From NCBI RefSeq assembly GCF_016432865.1, contig NC_067403.1:109988001-110052000 (forward strand): DNA of 64,000 nucleotides, in the 5' to 3' direction. Below are positions 33,632 through 41,889 of this stretch, one piece after another. The notes beneath the pieces are model-generated. The model was not told where the DNA came from and did not search any database. It saw only the letters and a list, made by a program, of their open reading frames with translations. The position numbers and the translations under genes were made by a program. The DNA is from Antechinus flavipes. Taxonomy: Eukaryota. Position 1 is the first letter of the stretch. Each line of letters opens with the position of its first letter.

Positions 33632-34720
33632 GAAGAAATTAAAGAGGAAAGAACCTATATGTAATAAATATTCATAATAGCTCTTTTTTAGAACAAAAAG
33701 AATTGGAAATTAAGGGGATGTTCATTCATTGGAGAATGGCTAAACAAATTATGATAGTTAAGGTAATGGAGCATTATTGTGCCTTAAGAAATGACAAAAG
33801 TTAAGGTTTCAGAAAAAAAACTGGAAAGACTTTTATGAACTGATCAGAAATAAATGAGCAAAACAAGAAAAACAATTTCAAAAAGTGTAAGGTTACTGAT
33901 AAATGCAATTATCAATCTTGGTTTCTAAGGCTTGATAATGAAATATATTTGCCTCTATCAAAGAGAGAAGTAGTTTATTTGAAAACCAGGTTGATATTTA
34001 CTTTCACATATGGCCACTGTAATGATTTTTTTCTGCTGTTACAAGGAAAGGTGGTTTTGTTTTTAGTTGGGGTTAAAGGTCAGATTTAGGTGAGAAAGAA
34101 GGACAAGGACTGGAATACCAAAGATAAAGAAGAAAAAAAAAGTCTAACAATCTCTATGGTGAGGGTGAAGAGGAGGGAAAAAAAAGGTAAAAGAATAAAT
34201 TTACATGATAACTTTAATATATACATTAAAGAAATAGTAAGTTGGGGGGGAAAAGATGATTGTACGTGAAACTACAGATCTTTTATGTACATTATATTAT
34301 GGTATAGAAATACTTGTTTTATTCAATAAATTAATTAAAAAAAAAAAACAAGGCTTGCACACTATAGAATTTAGACTAAGACTACTATTGACTGAAATTT
34401 AAAAAAAAAATATTTGTGAATGCTAAGAAAAAAGGAGCATAATTGTAGCAATGTCTAAAATACACAGAAAAGAGAGAAGTCCAGAAGGAGACAGAGTCAA
34501 GCAAAGCAGCTTTAAAGCTAACATGCTGAATTTGTCACATCACTTTCTTTTAAAAAAAGAAAATAAAATTTAATTTTTTAAAAATTGCATATAATAGAGA
34601 TTTCATGTTTTCATGTACATTCCTCATTTTTTGTTATTTTGTTTCTATAGAACTGATCATGTTTGATGATGCTTGTTAATTACACTTGAAAACAAAACAA
34701 ACTTATAAATTAAAAAAATA
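33632..34720 (+). mobile_element. Old L1 3' end and long 3'UTR
   Basis: ggaaattaaggggatgttcattcattggagaatggctaaacaaattatg; A-rich end at ~34715. Confidence 0.75.
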
Positions 34721-37199
34721 ATAATTGTAGAATGGCCTGCATCTGTAGGTAATGAGCTACTTCACTGGAGGTCTTTGAGAAGCAGCTGAATGACTATTTG
34801 TCAAGACATTATAAAGAGGCCTAATCATTTAGGTGTGTATTGGATTAAATGATCCCTGAGATCCCTGGCAACTATAAGCCCTTTGGATTTTATTGTTTTC
34901 TTAATACTCACTCATTTTTAAAAATTGTTAGAAGATAGAAGATACTGACATGCAAAGTTCATTTTCATTCCAAGTCCTTCCTCCACCTCCCCCAAATCCC
35001 CAGGGTTCCAGCCTCATCCCAAGTAAGGCAGATGCCTTAAAAGCAGATCTGTTCCTTATTCATCTACCTATCACTGAAATAGACACCATAAGAAAACTGA
35101 CTCCATTTCTGAGCTACGGGATAGCATGATGCATGGACAACAATATAAAATCATTTATTCTGCACCAAAGGAAAATTTAGAAATATCACAATTTTCTGAT
35201 GAAACTATTTCTCTTATTATGCTGTCAGCAATTCTCTCCTAAGAGGGGGAGGAAGATGCAATGCTCCAGACTCCAGATTCTAGACTAAAAATAAAACTTG
35301 TCATGATACATCTGATAAATAATAATGCAAACCATCAGCAGAAGGAGATGGGAAAGTGATAAGGAGATAAGAAATCTCATTAACTGGATATTTATGAGAA
35401 TTTATATGTAACTAAGAAAGAGTAAATAGATAGCATGTCTATCATTCAATTCTATAATTGAAACCTTGGGCTAAAAACAGGAGTCTTAAAAAAAAAAAAA
35501 AATAGTTCATCAATTAAGCCCAAGCACCTTACAGCTTGTTCTAAGGCGGAAGTCACAGGACTCCTTTACAGGCAAGGGAAATGAGGCTGAGAAAGTTCAG
35601 ATTATTTGATAAAAATTACATACCTATATGTTTCCTGGACTGGATTTGAACTCAGTTTCTTGATTCCAGGTCCAGGATTCTATCCACTGTACCATCTTGA
35701 TTAGGATATATGTCAATTATAATTTTTATCATAGAGTATCAGTTTTAAAAATGGACAATTATCCTACTGAATTTTAAAATCTTATGTTAAATTGATTTGC
35801 CATCTTATTGAACTGGAAGCAATCTATTAAAAGTTTCAAACTCTTTGCATAAGCACAGAACTTTGCAGAGAAAATTTCCTCTTCATATTTTACCATATAC
35901 TTTAGAAAAAATTAATACTTAATGTTTGTTATAGAACTACAGAATCCCAAGGTTAGAAAGGATTTTAAATATCTGGGTCAAATTGTAGCCTATTTGAATT
36001 TCTTTTCAGGTAGCTTTGCTTAAAGACCTCCAATGAGAGGGAATTCAACAGCTCCACACTCCACAATCCATTTTATTCCATACCTCTAATTGTTCTGAAT
36101 TTTTTATGCTGATCTTTCACTTTTTAATCCTGGTTCTGTCCTTCCAGGACTGTTCCTTCTCCCACATAATAGCCCTTCAAATATTTGAAGAAAGTTAATG
36201 TTCCCTTACAATTACTCCAGATTGGCCATTCTAATTCCTTCCATTCTTACACTTAGAAGCCAAGTAATCTAATAGAAAGGATGTTGGAGTTGGAGTTGAA
36301 AGAATTAATTCATTCCCCCAGCCCTGAGACTTTGCTTGGACTAGATATACAACATATATATCCACCACCACCATTTATCCTGCAAGAACGCTGTAAGGAA
36401 AGACTTTTGTTGAGCTATAAACTATAAATTATCTTTTTATGACTTTTTTTTTCCTCCAGAAAAACTGTAGCTTTGGCCCTTGTGCACTTTGATGTCATGA
36501 AACCATATTTTTGACTATATCCATGTCCTGAATGATACCATTCAGCTTCAAAGTGCTTTATCACTTGTAGCCATTCAAAAGAATTCAATTCAGCAGCCTT
36601 TGGGAGCTCATTCTTCATTCCCAGGGCAATCACAAGGGATTATTCTGAATTAGGTTACAGATTTGTAAACCACAATATTAGTAGTGAAATGTTTAGGCCT
36701 CTGGCATCCGTGGAGAATTTCAAAGCAAAGTTTACTCTGAGCCTCAACATTCCTTTTCAGTGAGACCAAAGAGCAATATAACCTTGAACTGTGCTCTGAA
36801 TGTAAAAGGCACTTGAAAAAACTGGATTTAGAAGAAAAAGATTTCAAAGATACGGCTTTCTGGAGAACATCTTACCTACCCCCCTTAAGTATAAATTTTA
36901 GATCCATTAAACTCGGCTTGGATTTTATCTTCAAGGGAACTGTAGTTATTGTGGCATTCTATGCACAGCCATGAAGCCTGTATTTTGTTAAGTGAAGATA
37001 TTTCTTGGTTAGAAAAATTTTCACCTTTTCAAGCTGAGTACTAATGAGCTTCTCCTGCTCAGAAAGAGAAATGGATTGTACTGAAGCCCCGAGAAGTCTA
37101 GGGCTCCTCTCTACTTACCTTCCTTTTTGTTTTCCTACTATACTAGTACCTTTTTTCCACTATTTGTGGTGTCTTATGGCTCACCTGACCCTTGTTCCA

Positions 37200-37400
37200 C
37201 AAATGACATCATTCAAACCAATTCCTGGCTCTCCATTGGCTGAGATGTAAAAGACCCTAATTCGGGATTGGTTTCCCATGATTTCTGGTTTGCCCCCTCC
37301 ACCTGGGATCCTTAAAAAAAGAAAAGGCTGCTTCACTTCTAACTGGAGCAGATTCTAGCTCTGGTGCAAGGGAGGCTACTCTGTAGAGCTCCCAATCTTC
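37200..37400 (+). promoter_or_regulatory. Candidate proximal promoter of the perilipin retrogene (CRE-like site plus CCAAT boxes)
   Basis: TGACATCA 37204-37211; CCAAT 37218-37222; ATTGG 37235-37239 and 37267-37271 (32 bp apart); further CCAAT at ~37392-37396; repeat-free sequence; motif evidence only. Confidence 0.45.
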
Positions 37401-37437
37401 CTATTTCTCTTGGGGACTAGCGGGTGACTTTTACCCA

Positions 37438-38586
37438 ATGTCTTCCACTGAACCTAAATCTGATTCTAGTGCTCATGCAGCCGAGCCAGCAAGCCAGGGT
37501 GTACTGGCATCTGTGGGTAATGTTGTGCTTGTCAGTCCTACCAGTAACAAAGATTGGGCTACCTCTGCTTCACTGAAGAAAGAAAATCTTCAACTCCAGC
37601 CAACAGATGAAGCTCCCGAGGAGAACCTGCCAGTTTTTCTGCAAGCCTCGCCTTCCCAGGTTACAGCTATTCCAAGTTTGGCCTCCAGGGCCAAAAATGT
37701 TGTAGCCAGTATACGGATTCGGGATTTGTCTGTGGCTTTTCAGAGTGGGCTGGATATTACTAAATCAAAGTTTGCCATAGACACTAAAACAGCATCAGAT
37801 TTGGCCAAATTTGATCAGAGGATGTTGGATAGTACAGATGAGTCGCAGCAATCTGAAGAAGGGGATGCCCATTACCTGCCTATGACAGATGATGAGCTGG
37901 CTGAGATTGCTGAGATTCAGTCATCAGGGGAATGGAAAATACCATCCCTCCAACAGCAAAGAAAAACACAACGTTACTTTGTGCGTCTGGGATCCCTGCC
38001 TCTCAACCTCCACCAGCAGGCCATTGAGTACTCCGTTGTAAAACTAGAGCAAATCAAGCAGAATGTCTTTGAGACTCACCTGCAGCTTTCTCAGATCATC
38101 AGCTTAATTAATAATGTTAAACAGACTGGTACTCCATGGTGTGAGAGTCAAGAGAAACTTGACCAAATATGGGTTCACTGGAATCGATTATTTCCTACAA
38201 ATAATAAGCAAGATGCTGCAAAGATTGAGTCCCGTACTCTCCTCCTATTTATGAAGCTCTTCTACAAGCTTTTGAACATCATCTTACTGCTCTTGTCTAG
38301 CACACGAGGCCTTTACGATGACATTTGGAGAAAGATAAGGCAGAGTCTTTATTGTATAAGAGAGTATGAGGCTACCCTTGCCAACCTGAATTCCTTTCAG
38401 GATCTTTCTTGCAAGTTCATAAACCTAATCCAGGAGGAGAGCAGCAAGATCCTAGCATTCCTAGACCAAATACAAGACAATCTGGCTGAGGACAAACCTT
38501 TCACTTGGATCATGGGACCCTTTGTCCCATCCAACCAAGGTTCCCAAAAGGCTGAGAAAACTTTTGAGAAGGTTTCAGAAGACTAG
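37438..38586 (+). CDS. PLIN3: Intronless, highly diverged perilipin-3 (TIP47)-derived retrogene, 382 aa; a paralogous retrocopy, not the parental gene
   Basis: Only long ORF in the window. PLIN3-type motifs in order: EENLP, YLPMTDDELAEIA, QQQRKTQRYFVRLGSL, LQLSQIISL..VKQ, QEKLDQIWVHWN, ESRTL, SFQDLS, TWIMGPF. These match PLIN3 (QQQRQEQSYFVRLGSL, LQLSQVLSL, QEKLHQMWLSWN, SFQDLS, TWLVGPF) better than PLIN2. No introns, whereas perilipin genes are multi-exon. Confidence 0.88.
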   Translation: MSSTEPKSDSSAHAAEPASQGVLASVGNVVLVSPTSNKDWATSASLKKENLQLQPTDEAPEENLPVFLQASPSQVTAIPSLASRAKNVVASIRIRDLSVAFQSGLDITKSKFAIDTKTASDLAKFDQRMLDSTDESQQSEEGDAHYLPMTDDELAEIAEIQSSGEWKIPSLQQQRKTQRYFVRLGSLPLNLHQQAIEYSVVKLEQIKQNVFETHLQLSQIISLINNVKQTGTPWCESQEKLDQIWVHWNRLFPTNNKQDAAKIESRTLLLFMKLFYKLLNIILLLLSSTRGLYDDIWRKIRQSLYCIREYEATLANLNSFQDLSCKFINLIQEESSKILAFLDQIQDNLAEDKPFTWIMGPFVPSNQGSQKAEKTFEKVSED

Positions 38587-38609
38587 AAATGTCCTGGTTC
38601 AAAGGATCA

Positions 38610-38930
38610 AAGGTTAGCATATAATATTTTTACATATATTCTCATTTATTCCTCACAGCATCCCAAAGAGCTAAATCCTATTATTATCCCCTCTCCAGAA
38701 CCACAAGAGGAAACTAAAACTGAAAAGTTGCACAGGGTCATACAGGTAAACACCTGAAGGTAGTTTTGGGGATCCTCACAACATTCCAGTGAGGTTAATA
38801 GTATTACTGTCTTTTACAGATGAGACTGGGAGATGAAATTATTTAAGAGGTCATATCTAGTGAATGTCTAAGGCAAAATGTAAACTTTAAGGAGATTCCT
38901 GACTCCAAATCTAAAATTTGATGCTTCTTG
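38610..38930 (-). mobile_element. MIR fragments just downstream of the perilipin ORF
   Basis: atttattcctcacagcatccc...gaggaaactaaaactg...ttgcacagggtcatacag. Confidence 0.65.
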
Positions 38931-40469
38931 GCTATGTGATTTTACTAACACTTTCCTCCAAATTACCATTTCATGAAGGACACTTACTGGAAAGTGAATG
39001 TTTTCATCTTTAAAGACTACTTCTAGGCTAATTTGTTTTTACTTTCTCTCCTAGATTTCGGGAAGCCAAGTGTCCAGAATTCCTTATGGGTTGGTCTTTT
39101 TCCAGTTGCCCTGAGACCCAGAAGAACAAGCAATTAAGTAACTAAGCTGCCTCTAGTGAACTGGGGTATTAAGGGACAAACAACCAAGACCATCTCTCTA
39201 GCATGTCCCATAGCAATCATGTTCTGTTTCATTGGGCCTGTTAAGATGTAATCCATATCCAGGATGTTAGTAATAAGTAAGACATCCAATATCCTTGAAT
39301 TGTTTTTTTGTTTGTTTCTCCTCAGTGGAACAAGATAACTTTTGTTTTCTGTCAAATTTTAACTGCAGCTTAAAAATTATTAAAAAAAAAAAAAAACAAT
39401 GAAATATTTTTATCTGTTTTCCATTAAAATTGGACTTTTAAGCTGGGGGAAGGGACAGGAAGGAAACTCCTTCCAACCACTACCACTTACTGGTCATCAC
39501 TGAAAGTAGGAGAAAAAAAAAATTGTCCTGAAGGTGAATAGGAAAAACTCCCTCTTTCCAGAACCTTTGCATTATCCCCAGATGAATCGGGTTAGATTTT
39601 AGGTCACTACTTGGATTCAAATTAGAAGCACCTGAAATAAGATGAAATGATCAAAAATATAGTTTGACTGGGTCTATGCCCTGTCTTTAGGAAAATAAAG
39701 TAGTTCTGGTTATTTACTTTCCAAAAGCACAAAGGGAAGAAAGCTATTACTAAACAGGACTATTCTTTATTAATTAAAAAAAAAAAAAAAAAAAAACCTC
39801 AAGATTGGTGGGACTGCTGAATCCCAAAGCCTTTTTTTTTTTTTTCTTAATTGAGAAATTAGGCCCAATTCCTTTGAAACGCCTACTTCTTTTGATAACA
39901 GTGAGAGTCAGTTCTTGAGGAACTGATTCCTTTGTTCACAATGTGAAAATCATATGGCCAGCTTTATATGTTAGCTCTCATGCTAACACATCCTGAGTTA
40001 ATGCTCTCAGTATCACTAGGCTGAGAAGGTCAATGATTGGCTGCATCAGCTAGAAAGAACAAAGACAAAAAGCAACAATACACATGTCAGCTGTAAGTTG
40101 GAGGTTCCTGATGGTGAGGGAAGGAAAGGAGAGGGACTGGATATAGGTGAACTATTGGTGATCCTTCTAATTGTTTTAATTCTTATTATGAATTTGATCA
40201 TTACTTTAAAGCTTTCCTCTCTATCCACCCCACAGCTATGATAACCCCCAATTTCTCTAACTATGTTTAGAAAAGATTTTTCATATTTCCAGGTCCTTAA
40301 ACATCTAGCTAGTGTGCTTTGGGTAGTGGGAACTAAAGGCCAATATCAGAGATTCCTAATAGAATCCACCTGTGAAACTGGCTATCAAAAGTGGTAACAA
40401 GTAGAGAGTTGCATCAGAGAATATACCTGGAAATAATGATGTTTTCTTTCTAGATAGTACTTTATTATC

Positions 40470-40760
40470 GGGTAGTTAAGATGATATGGTAGACAAAGCT
40501 CTGGACCTGTAATCGGGAAGACCAGAATTCAAATGTGATCTCAAATACTAGCTGTGTAATCTTGGGTAAATTATTTAATTTTGGTCTGCCTCAATTTCTT
40601 CAATTATAAAATGGGGCTTATAATAATGGCACCTTCCTTCCAGGATTGTTTTGAGGATCAATTTGATAATATTTATAAATTGCTTACATGGTACCTAGCA
40701 CATACGTAGTAGGCACTATGTAATACTAATTAGTATTATTATCATCATTATTTTCAGGCA
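40470..40760 (+). mobile_element. MIR, near full length
   Basis: gaagaccagaattcaaatgtgatctc...ctgcctcaatttctcaattataaaatgggg...ttgttttgaggatcaa. Confidence 0.8.
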
Positions 40761-41889
40761 CTTAACCTTACAGCAGTGAGGAAGACTATATAATAAATCA
40801 AGGATCCCTGAATTCTTCAGATTCCTATGAATTCATGGTATTCTTTATCTTCAAGACAGATTGAACTTCCTGGTTTTAGTACCTGGTTTTCATGAGTTGC
40901 TTGTGGGCAAAATATTTATCATTTGTGGGCCAATGATGAGTCTCTCCTAACTTAAAGAGAATGACAAACACAATTTGTTACAAGATGCTTGAATTCTTCC
41001 TAGGATCTTCCAGACCTTGTCCTCCACTGGTCTTTAGAAACCAGGGGTCACCTGCACCATACATACAGTAAGGCACTGAAATAGATCTTGATTGTAAAAA
41101 CTGTTAACACATTAAGGACATGGAAATTCACTAGTGTAGAAACTCCCTCCACTGACAGATCGCAACTCATCTCTAACTTAGTCCTTGAGGATTGCCTGAG
41201 ACTCAGAGGTAAAGTAATTTATCCAAAAATAGCTAGAAAACATTGAAAGAAAGATTCAAATGGATCATCCAGGCTCCAAATCCAGAATTCTATCCATTAA
41301 ACCATATGCCCACTCATCACACAAAATATTAAAAATGAGATTAGATTATATCCATTTTCAGTACTAGCATTTTATTAGTAAATGACAGTATTGCATAGTC
41401 CTCAAAGTCATACTTAGATCACATCTACTGATGGCTTGTAGAGCTTAATTGTTGATAATAGTAGCATGTATATACTGACTTAAGGTTTTAAAGACCTTTG
41501 CCTATTTTATCTCATTTGATCAATAATCCTCTGAGCTAGATGCTATTATCCCCATTTTACAGTTGAGGAAAGAGAGTCAGATAGTAGATAAGAGACTTGC
41601 TTTTCTCTCCATTAACTGCTTGTATTTGTTATAATTCTTAATCTCTCAAAAGAGAGAATGTTCTCACTAAGAGTCCATTACATCAAAGAAATAATAGATC
41701 TAAAATATTCTCCCTATCCACTCAATTCCCAGCCCTTCATCCCCGCCTTCACCCTAATGAAACACACACATACACATCCCTTTGTTATGAAAGAAGATTG
41801 GGGAATCAATTATTCAACATGAGCAAAGCTGAGTTGCCATAGATACCATAGTTGGATTATTATTTTTTTTAATTTAAACATAATAGAAT

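Follow-up and report, generated by a model that had tools for sequence, protein, structure and literature searches.

Evidence for a transcribed and rapidly evolving PLIN3 retrogene in Australian marsupials

Mammals are usually credited with five perilipins, and extra perilipins confined to one lineage exist, for example PLIN6 of teleosts. PLIN6 and the PLIN1-5 paralogues are products of duplication at the level of DNA or of the genome, and they keep their introns as well as the PAT and 11-mer repeat regions. For retrogenes, intron gain and intronization are treated in the portions of PMC3002245 and PMC3565874 considered here, and nesting in the introns of host genes in the corresponding portion of PMC3113556. 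Here we analysed a 64,000-nt window of the Antechinus flavipes genome (NC_067403.1; C6:109988001-110052000, the genome searched being 3.19 Gb; positions without a chromosome are counted from the first letter of the window) and found in it a single-exon gene that descends from PLIN3. With a probability of about 0.8, we take it to be a bona fide, transcribed, protein-coding PLIN3 retrogene that has existed since at least the ancestor of dasyurids and diprotodonts and that evolves very fast.

Retrocopy origin, orthologues and transcript

One uninterrupted open reading frame (ORF) of 382 codons runs from ATG to TAG at 37438-38586 on the forward strand, and the ORF listing holds no other ORF of at least 80 aa within 36500-39500. 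Its protein matches the Pfam Perilipin profile PF03036 (E 2.5e-36, 126 bits against a cut-off of 33) over residues 82-365, which correspond to profile positions 112-402, and the crystal-structure sequence of the TIP47/PLIN3 C-terminus, 1SZI, matches residues 141-365 (phmmer, E 8.6e-36). The parental PLIN3 of the same genome, which scores 583 bits with PF03036, lies on C1 at 660603634-660613938 and has seven coding exons with unique GT-AG junctions; the coding sequence (CDS) rebuilt from them encodes 464 aa, each exon is 94-100% identical to that of Sminthopsis PLIN3, and these seven coding exons recur in PLIN3 of Sminthopsis, Trichosurus and Notamacropus. When aligned to this rebuilt CDS, the window ORF spans all six parental intron positions. 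Thus, because an ORF on C6 crosses all six junctions of a seven-exon parent on C1, the window ORF is a processed retrocopy of PLIN3 mRNA. Only three coding patches are still similar to the parent in their DNA, and similarity to the parental untranslated regions (UTRs), a poly(A) tail and target-site duplications were looked for around the ORF and none was recognisable, apart from an A-run downstream that may be a relic tail (see below).

A preliminary description of this DNA, made from the sequence alone, had proposed an old, intronless PLIN3 retrocopy with an intact 382-codon frame free of stops and frameshifts, PLIN3-type C-terminal motifs and no poly(A) at the ORF edge, and these claims are borne out by the ORF listing, by the PF03036 and 1SZI matches, by the absence of six parental introns on a different chromosome and by the lack of a poly(A) run directly adjoining the ORF. 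It had also placed MIR fragments right after the stop codon; what begins ~40 nt past the stop is a dispersed-repeat fragment with at least 17 genomic copies. Its picture of an ORF followed directly by junk has to be corrected, since the transcript runs past the stop and contains a 3' UTR intron at 38611-39052.

A word-based protein search, sensitive enough to pick up orthologues at 54% identity and the parent at 40%, yielded the protein of the window ORF itself and four close relatives, the next match being canonical PLIN3 of Sminthopsis at 40%. These relatives are P0002 (382 aa, 86% identical to the window ORF), which has a UniParc entry only and probably comes from another dasyurid species, and the 'perilipin-3-like' proteins of Sminthopsis crassicaudata (P0003, 379 aa, 83%), Trichosurus vulpecula (P0004, 382 aa, 58%) and Notamacropus eugenii (P0005, 393 aa, 54%). 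Where annotated isoforms differ, isoform X1 was used. The retro protein is hence intact in five species at lengths of 379-393 aa, and PF03036 scores are 140-185 bits for the four orthologues and 126-185 bits for all five. The genes of Sminthopsis, Trichosurus and Notamacropus have a single coding exon each, and as their flanks can be aligned collinearly with the window for ±10 kb, they are true orthologues. All DNA and codon comparisons below use these three species and our own, with P0002 as protein only; in the alignment of the four, ATG and TAG stand at aligned positions in every species. The comparison across marsupials that the preliminary description had suggested therefore finds intact copies in Dasyuridae, Phalangeridae and Macropodidae.

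In the best protein tree the retro clade adjoins all marsupial PLIN3 (support 86/81), which fits the marsupial-lineage origin proposed in the preliminary description. Dating the retroposition from this tree was tried and abandoned, since approximately unbiased (AU) tests cannot date the origin: they reject neither an origin later than the opossum split (p 0.28), nor one that precedes the therian split (p 0.14), nor a placement with eutherians (p 0.18). The window's own protein is already present in NCBI and UniRef, its orthologues are in NCBI as 'perilipin-3-like', and a literature search found no published account of a perilipin-3-like retrogene; what is already known amounts to automatic gene models and names, which say nothing of a retrocopy origin, of the mode of selection, of lost domains or of expression.

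Transcription is shown by a 1.6-kb RNA contig in each of two small runs of one study (X20 and X21), whose organism is ~99.5% identical to the window. The contigs cover 37352 or 37355 to 38610 joined to 39053-39368, so that 442 nt with GT..AG boundaries are skipped, and a DNA run of the same organism (X18) is collinear with the genome; the coverage by RNA contigs is cut off at 39368, at a repeat that was skipped in placing them. The transcription check named in the preliminary description has in this way yielded spliced mRNA contigs, and a second search of runs, restricted to RNA-Seq libraries, gave nothing further. In the transcribed allele the ORF is intact and carries R95Q, V200I and three synonymous changes. 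Taken together, two alleles sampled from this species or one very near to it differ at four amino acids (A18G, R95Q, V200I and Y305H) and by three silent substitutions (37490, 37721, 38035-38037, 38350).

A metatranscriptomic RNA run (X1) was considered as expression evidence and rejected, because its contig is unspliced and collinear and shows the DNA or pre-mRNA of a relative. This contig, from organism A, extends for 4.9 kb over 36354-41000 at ~95% identity, and among the indels listed none falls in the ORF.

The splice sites of the 3' UTR intron are conserved among the species. The donor AG/GTTAG is conserved in all four, the stop lies 24-26 nt before the exon-exon junction in each of them, and the acceptor block at 39020-39059, which includes the branch/polypyrimidine tract and the acceptor, is 93-95% identical four ways, in the 99th percentile of flank windows. 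In its 5' part (~38628-38730) the intron consists of a fragment of a dispersed repeat, for which the genome has at least 17 matches. Downstream of the RNA contigs, an ATTAAA at 39379-39384 and a genome-encoded run of 15 A at 39382-39396 keep their positions in our species, Sminthopsis and Trichosurus (three of the four); they are likely to mark the 3' end region of the transcript, or may be what is left of a tail.

The annotations of Sminthopsis and Notamacropus place the gene within, and antisense to, a Myelin_PLP-family gene. In our genome the Myelin_PLP exons lie on the minus strand at C6:109.60-109.68 Mb, 0.31-0.39 Mb from the retrogene, and the position of the retrogene would fit a long 5' intron of that gene. 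We propose that a PLIN3 mRNA retrocopy would have landed, in antisense orientation, within a long intron of a gene of the Myelin_PLP family (PLP/GPM6-like) before the dasyurid-diprotodont split, and that it would have gained its own promoter and a spliced 3' UTR intron and then stayed protein-coding.

Selection on the frame and on the protein

Second-generation copies of the retrogene provide a control for what happens to such a sequence without selection. The genome search found three decayed copies (Table 1) with 3-8 stops each, which are 72-81% identical in nucleotides to the retrogene as against 68-69% to PLIN3, the C1 copy having no PLIN3 match. The DNA tree places all three inside the retro clade (100/100); the C5 copy branches close to the base of that clade, and the C1 and C2 copies fall on the dasyurid stem. 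The C5 and C1 copies can be aligned without a break over the junction of exon 1 and exon 2 with the 442-nt intron exactly missing, and by these alignments they are processed copies of the retrogene's own spliced mRNA, not of PLIN3. Because spliced mRNA was retrocopied at least twice, expression in the germ line or early embryo must have occurred at several times, and because the processed copies lack the 3' UTR intron exactly, this intron is old. The decayed copies are thus a neutral control for retrogene sequence.

On the crown tree of the four species, with fitted branch lengths, 22.4 stop-creating substitutions are expected and the probability of none is 2e-10; in a neutral simulation, all four orthologous ORFs were open in 0 of 20000 runs. 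Within the ORF, every indel has a length divisible by three (2/2, 11/11, 10/10 and 5/5) compared with 34/151 (~22%) in the upstream flank, both counted in an unconstrained nucleotide alignment, and the codon alignment contains 15 indel blocks, all in frame. Hence neutral decay is excluded, because there are no stops and all indels are in frame, and the reading frame is clearly held open by selection; the earlier argument that only in-frame indels are hard to reconcile with neutral decay stands. Neutral decay of a processed pseudogene that has escaped stops and frameshifts by luck, or an artefact of annotation, would agree with a mean dN/dS of about 1 and with nucleotide divergence equal to that of the flanks (both below). 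Besides the stop and indel statistics, five intact orthologues, the spliced transcript and the stops in the sister copies speak against it, and a divergence of 9-28% together with collinear, divergent flanks excludes that the loci are assembly copies of one another, so that we give this explanation a negligible chance.

The ratio of non-synonymous to synonymous substitution rates (dN/dS, omega) gave a different picture from the frame. By maximum likelihood (ML) on the four-species tree, crown omega was 0.95-1.06 under Fequal, F1x4, F3x4, F61 and MG94, and twice the log-likelihood difference (2dlnL) against omega of 1 stayed below 0.2. IQ-TREE reproduced our own likelihood and gave 0.983 for the retrogene as compared with 0.184 for parental PLIN3 in the same four species. 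Under a three-ratio model, omega was 1.01 in the retrogene crown (not different from 1, 2dlnL 0.01), 0.185 in the parental PLIN3 crown (equality with the retrogene crown rejected, 2dlnL 68.8) and 0.69 on the stem between retrogene and parent (p 0.03 against 1); the bundle region of the retrogene alone gave 1.45, which is not significantly above 1. Pairwise NG86 estimates of 0.67-0.73 within the clade were set aside, because this method ignores transition bias (kappa ~3.3) and ML gave ~1.0. A dN/dS near 1 had been named beforehand in the preliminary description among the outcomes that would speak against selection, and that is the mean that was found.

Constraint on the protein appears when sites are separated. 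Of the columns without variation in 21 canonical tetrapod PLIN3 sequences, 30% vary inside the retro clade, compared with 65% of the weakly conserved ones (Fisher p 1e-5); along the stem, the parental residue was lost at 20% of PLIN3-invariant and 56% of weakly conserved columns (p 5e-6). Site models, run with our own code after its M0 likelihood had been validated against IQ-TREE, favoured M1a over an all-neutral model (2dlnL 8.7, p 0.013) with ~17% of codons at omega near 0, and M2a over M1a (2dlnL 9.2, p 0.01) with ~10% of codons at omega near 4, among them residues 200, 235 and 316. Codon 200, a candidate positively selected site, is also polymorphic (V200I). These results suggest a mosaic evolution, with a constrained structural skeleton and a remainder that evolves fast and perhaps adaptively. 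In this mosaic, selection would purge stops and frameshifts and guard the residues that hold the TIP47-type C-terminal fold, and the rest of the protein would turn over at or above the neutral rate; mean dN/dS would be ~1 because the unguarded part evolves in this manner. The claim of the preliminary description that an old retrocopy has been kept under selection therefore stands for the frame, which is protected, and for the protein it holds in a narrower form, as heterogeneity among sites and sparing of PLIN3-invariant residues.

An explanation in which the RNA, or the act of translation, is selected and the protein sequence is irrelevant would also keep the frame open, for example in a transcript antisense to its host, if an open frame avoids nonsense-mediated decay (NMD). 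With the junction 24-26 nt past the stop, premature stops more than ~50 nt upstream would trigger NMD (the NMD rule being 50-55 nt); mean omega is ~1 and the ORF diverges like its flanks; the 3' UTR intron, its splice sites and the distance from stop to junction are conserved in four species; and the gene lies antisense within an intron of a Myelin_PLP gene. All of this would be expected under selection on RNA only. An irrelevant protein would, on the other hand, not preferentially keep the PLIN3-invariant residues, both within the clade and on the stem, nor hold ~17% of its codons at omega near 0; moreover, the TIP47 fold is still predicted and recognisable, a hydrophobic helix is a shared derived protein feature of four species (see below), and losing either the intron or the start codon (ATG) would have offered a simpler way around NMD. 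Thus we regard selection on RNA alone as very improbable.

Several observations weigh against a functional protein-coding retrogene. Mean crown dN/dS is indistinguishable from 1 and so not significantly below it, and the Kimura two-parameter (K2P) distances of the ORF to the three other species, 0.089/0.258/0.284, compare with 0.086/0.226/0.234 for upstream intron DNA, which is not higher. The site-model tests rest on four sequences, with p only ~0.01. The expression data are at the RNA level, come from one study of undisclosed tissue and consist of assembled contigs, not raw reads. The hydrophobic helix contains Lys, Asn or Asp and is not a clean transmembrane segment. Furthermore, the protein search gave no retro-like protein from koala, wombat, Petaurus, bilby, Dromiciops or two opossums (Monodelphis and Gracilinanus), all of which have an annotated canonical PLIN3; the retrogene may have been lost or broken in several lineages, and a protein search cannot separate absence, loss and non-annotation.

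Protein architecture and proposed role

The N-terminal half of the protein has departed from the perilipin plan. An in-frame deletion of 40 residues of the PAT core is common to all five retro proteins, with a short N-terminal remnant that still aligns, and the N-terminal PAT domain was not recovered, as the PF03036 match starts at profile position 112 (84-116 across the retro proteins). The 11-mer repeat region is partly alignable; it is shortened by 23-40 residues, bears lineage-specific in-frame indels and is interrupted by Pro and acidic residues. In the parental gene, dasyurid PLIN3 (464 aa) has 22 residues, two further 11-mer repeats, that diprotodont PLIN3 (443 aa) does not have, and this expansion is absent from the retrogene. 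AlphaFold2, run on a shallow alignment of 26 sequences, predicted residues 1-145 to be disordered, with helix only at 121-125 and predicted local distance difference test scores (pLDDT) below 40 through residue 140.

The C-terminal half is predicted to be ordered. AlphaFold2 modelled residues ~146-367 as an alpha/beta part and a helical bundle with pLDDT of 70-88, and Foldseek matched the predicted C-terminal domain to 1SZI (E 6.5e-10, TM score 0.76 by target length), so the models show that a TIP47-type C-terminal fold is retained. Within it, one bundle helix has changed its character. The 19-residue Kyte-Doolittle maximum is 1.76-2.21 in four retro proteins and -0.28 in the homologous parental helix, and along helix 264-288 Leu, Ile or Phe stands in place of parental polar residues in all four species, which makes this a derived feature.

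The protein could also be a tissue-restricted (for example testis) exchangeable droplet coat that works like PLIN3, which would require only subfunctionalisation and relaxed constraint and no new mechanism. The retained C-terminal domain fits this, as do the remnants of N-terminal motifs and some 11-mers that still align to the parent and the germline expression implied by the second-generation copies; many testis retrogenes evolve fast. Such a coat is difficult to reconcile with a PAT core deleted in all orthologues and 11-mers cut and interrupted as described, with Pfam being blind to profile positions 1 to ~85-115, with a prediction of almost no helix in residues 1-145, with a polar bundle helix that is now hydrophobic in all species and with the ~10% of sites for which M2a suggests omega near 4. 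We therefore regard a PLIN3-like coat as improbable.

The additional and possibly neofunctionalised lipid-droplet protein suggested in the preliminary description would be one in which the canonical droplet-targeting part, the PAT core and most 11-mers, is degraded. A retrogene product with a changed mode of membrane binding would accommodate these features. Exchangeable coating between cytosol and droplet through the PAT/11-mer amphipathic helices would have been lost, these parts being deleted or degraded, and in its place the protein would associate more stably with the lipid-droplet monolayer or the endoplasmic reticulum (ER) membrane through the retained four-helix bundle, to which the near-entirely hydrophobic bundle helix would contribute. 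Because the classical targeting module is degraded and the bundle helix is hydrophobic, we favour such stable association through the C-terminal domain, in germ cells, as a tentative proposal, and consider the odds to be somewhat against it. The fuller reading is that this would be a sixth, germ-cell perilipin of Australian marsupials, which discarded the PAT/11-mer region, uses a hydrophobic bundle helix as anchor, is under recurrent positive selection on the bundle and has a new role at droplets or membranes in place of serving as a backup of PLIN3; taken as a whole, this is less likely than not, and we offer it as a conjecture.

The retrogene would be a marsupial-specific addition to the five perilipins, at least as old as the dasyurid-diprotodont split. 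The locus would also constitute a natural domain-deletion experiment, in which the TIP47 C-terminal fold is kept, the PAT core and most 11-mers are gone and a helix has become hydrophobic, and these losses bear on the debated question of which parts of perilipins drive droplet binding. Moreover, it is a quantified case in which mean dN/dS is ~1 alongside overwhelming evidence of selection on the ORF, and it warns that a dN/dS near 1 alone is insufficient to call retrocopies dead. From DNA alone, the second-generation copies prove that the retrogene was once expressed in the germ line, and they attest the age of its gained intron.

Features of the locus and comparison with known systems

Coordinates are collected in Table 1. 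Upstream of the transcript, the second ATTGG and the block around it are conserved in all four species, and the first ATTGG is changed in Notamacropus; the 127-nt upstream block is not more conserved overall than background (four-way identity 0.64 versus 0.61), and a promoter function of these motifs is therefore only putative. The 5' UTR is poorly conserved (four-way identity 0.29).

Table 1. Features of the PLIN3 retrogene in the window and its decayed copies elsewhere in the genome
Feature	Coordinates	Strand	Basis or remark
Putative core promoter	37225..37351	+	two inverted CCAAT boxes, TATA-like box
Inverted CCAAT boxes, ATTGG	37235-37239 and 37267-37271		motif positions
TATA-like A-rich box	37312-37321		~30-40 nt before first transcribed base seen
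5' UTR, 86 nt, no upstream ATG	37352..37437	+	RNA contig starts 37352 and 37355, approximate ends
CDS, single exon, 382 codons + TAG, PLIN3-derived perilipin-family protein	37438..38586	+	ORF, Pfam, parent alignment
PAT-core deletion site, between codons 58 and 59	37609..37614	+	protein alignments
C-terminal alpha/beta + four-helix-bundle domain (predicted), residues 141-365	37858..38532	+	phmmer, AlphaFold2, Foldseek
Strongly hydrophobic 19-residue stretch, residues 268-286, bundle helix	38239..38295	+	Kyte-Doolittle
3' UTR, first 24 nt, to exon-exon junction (38610 joined to 39053)	38587..38610	+	RNA contigs
3' UTR intron, GT..AG, 442 nt	38611..39052	+	RNA contigs versus collinear DNA run
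Second exon (3' UTR)	39053..39396	+	RNA contigs to 39368; similarity of processed copy L003 to ~39383
Decayed copy L003/L006	C5:215691354-215692299		3' UTR intron precisely absent
Decayed copy L005	C1:420447357-420447718		3' UTR intron precisely absent
Decayed copy L002	C2:30580676-30581065		

In the surroundings of the gene, several 40-nt blocks upstream of it within 34600-37200 (for example 36464-36503, 35156-35195 and 35318-35357) are 93-97% identical across the four marsupials, whose neutral divergence is ~0.23-0.28 for comparison; the intron of the Myelin_PLP-family host gene probably contains conserved non-coding elements here. Contig depth in the DNA run rises from ~30 to 1300-2700 at 35640-35700 and 40520-40610, with many loose ends, which indicates high-copy interspersed repeats. 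Downstream of the gene, a long A-run at 39777-39797 is followed by a T-run at 39832-39846, and both look like tails of inserted retroposons.

Compared with PLIN3/TIP47, the retro protein shares PF03036 and the C-terminal alpha/beta and four-helix-bundle domain of 1SZI, it keeps family-invariant motifs around LPMTD.ELA, YFV.LGSL, SFQDLS and TW..GPF, and its best non-retro matches are PLIN3 of marsupials and other tetrapods. It differs in being 40% identical to Sminthopsis PLIN3, in having one coding exon instead of seven, in the deleted PAT core (40 aa) and shortened 11-mer region, in a bundle helix whose 19-residue Kyte-Doolittle value reaches 2.2 versus -0.28, in an omega of ~1.0 versus 0.18 and in its location on another chromosome within the intron of another gene. 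The NCBI 'perilipin-3-like' models of Sminthopsis crassicaudata, Trichosurus vulpecula and Notamacropus eugenii are its orthologues, with names given automatically. Like PLIN6 beside PLIN1-5, it is an extra member confined to one vertebrate lineage; unlike them, it is RNA-derived and has lost the PAT core. With functional mammalian retrogenes, as far as the portions of PMC3002245, PMC3565874 and PMC3113556 considered here describe them, it shares an intronless coding region, a putative new promoter, a gained UTR intron, a location in the intron of a host gene, fast evolution and inferred germline expression. It differs from the retrogenes in those portions in its parent, PLIN3, for which our literature search found no described functional retrogene, and in that two or more processed copies derive from the marsupial retrogene's own spliced mRNA.

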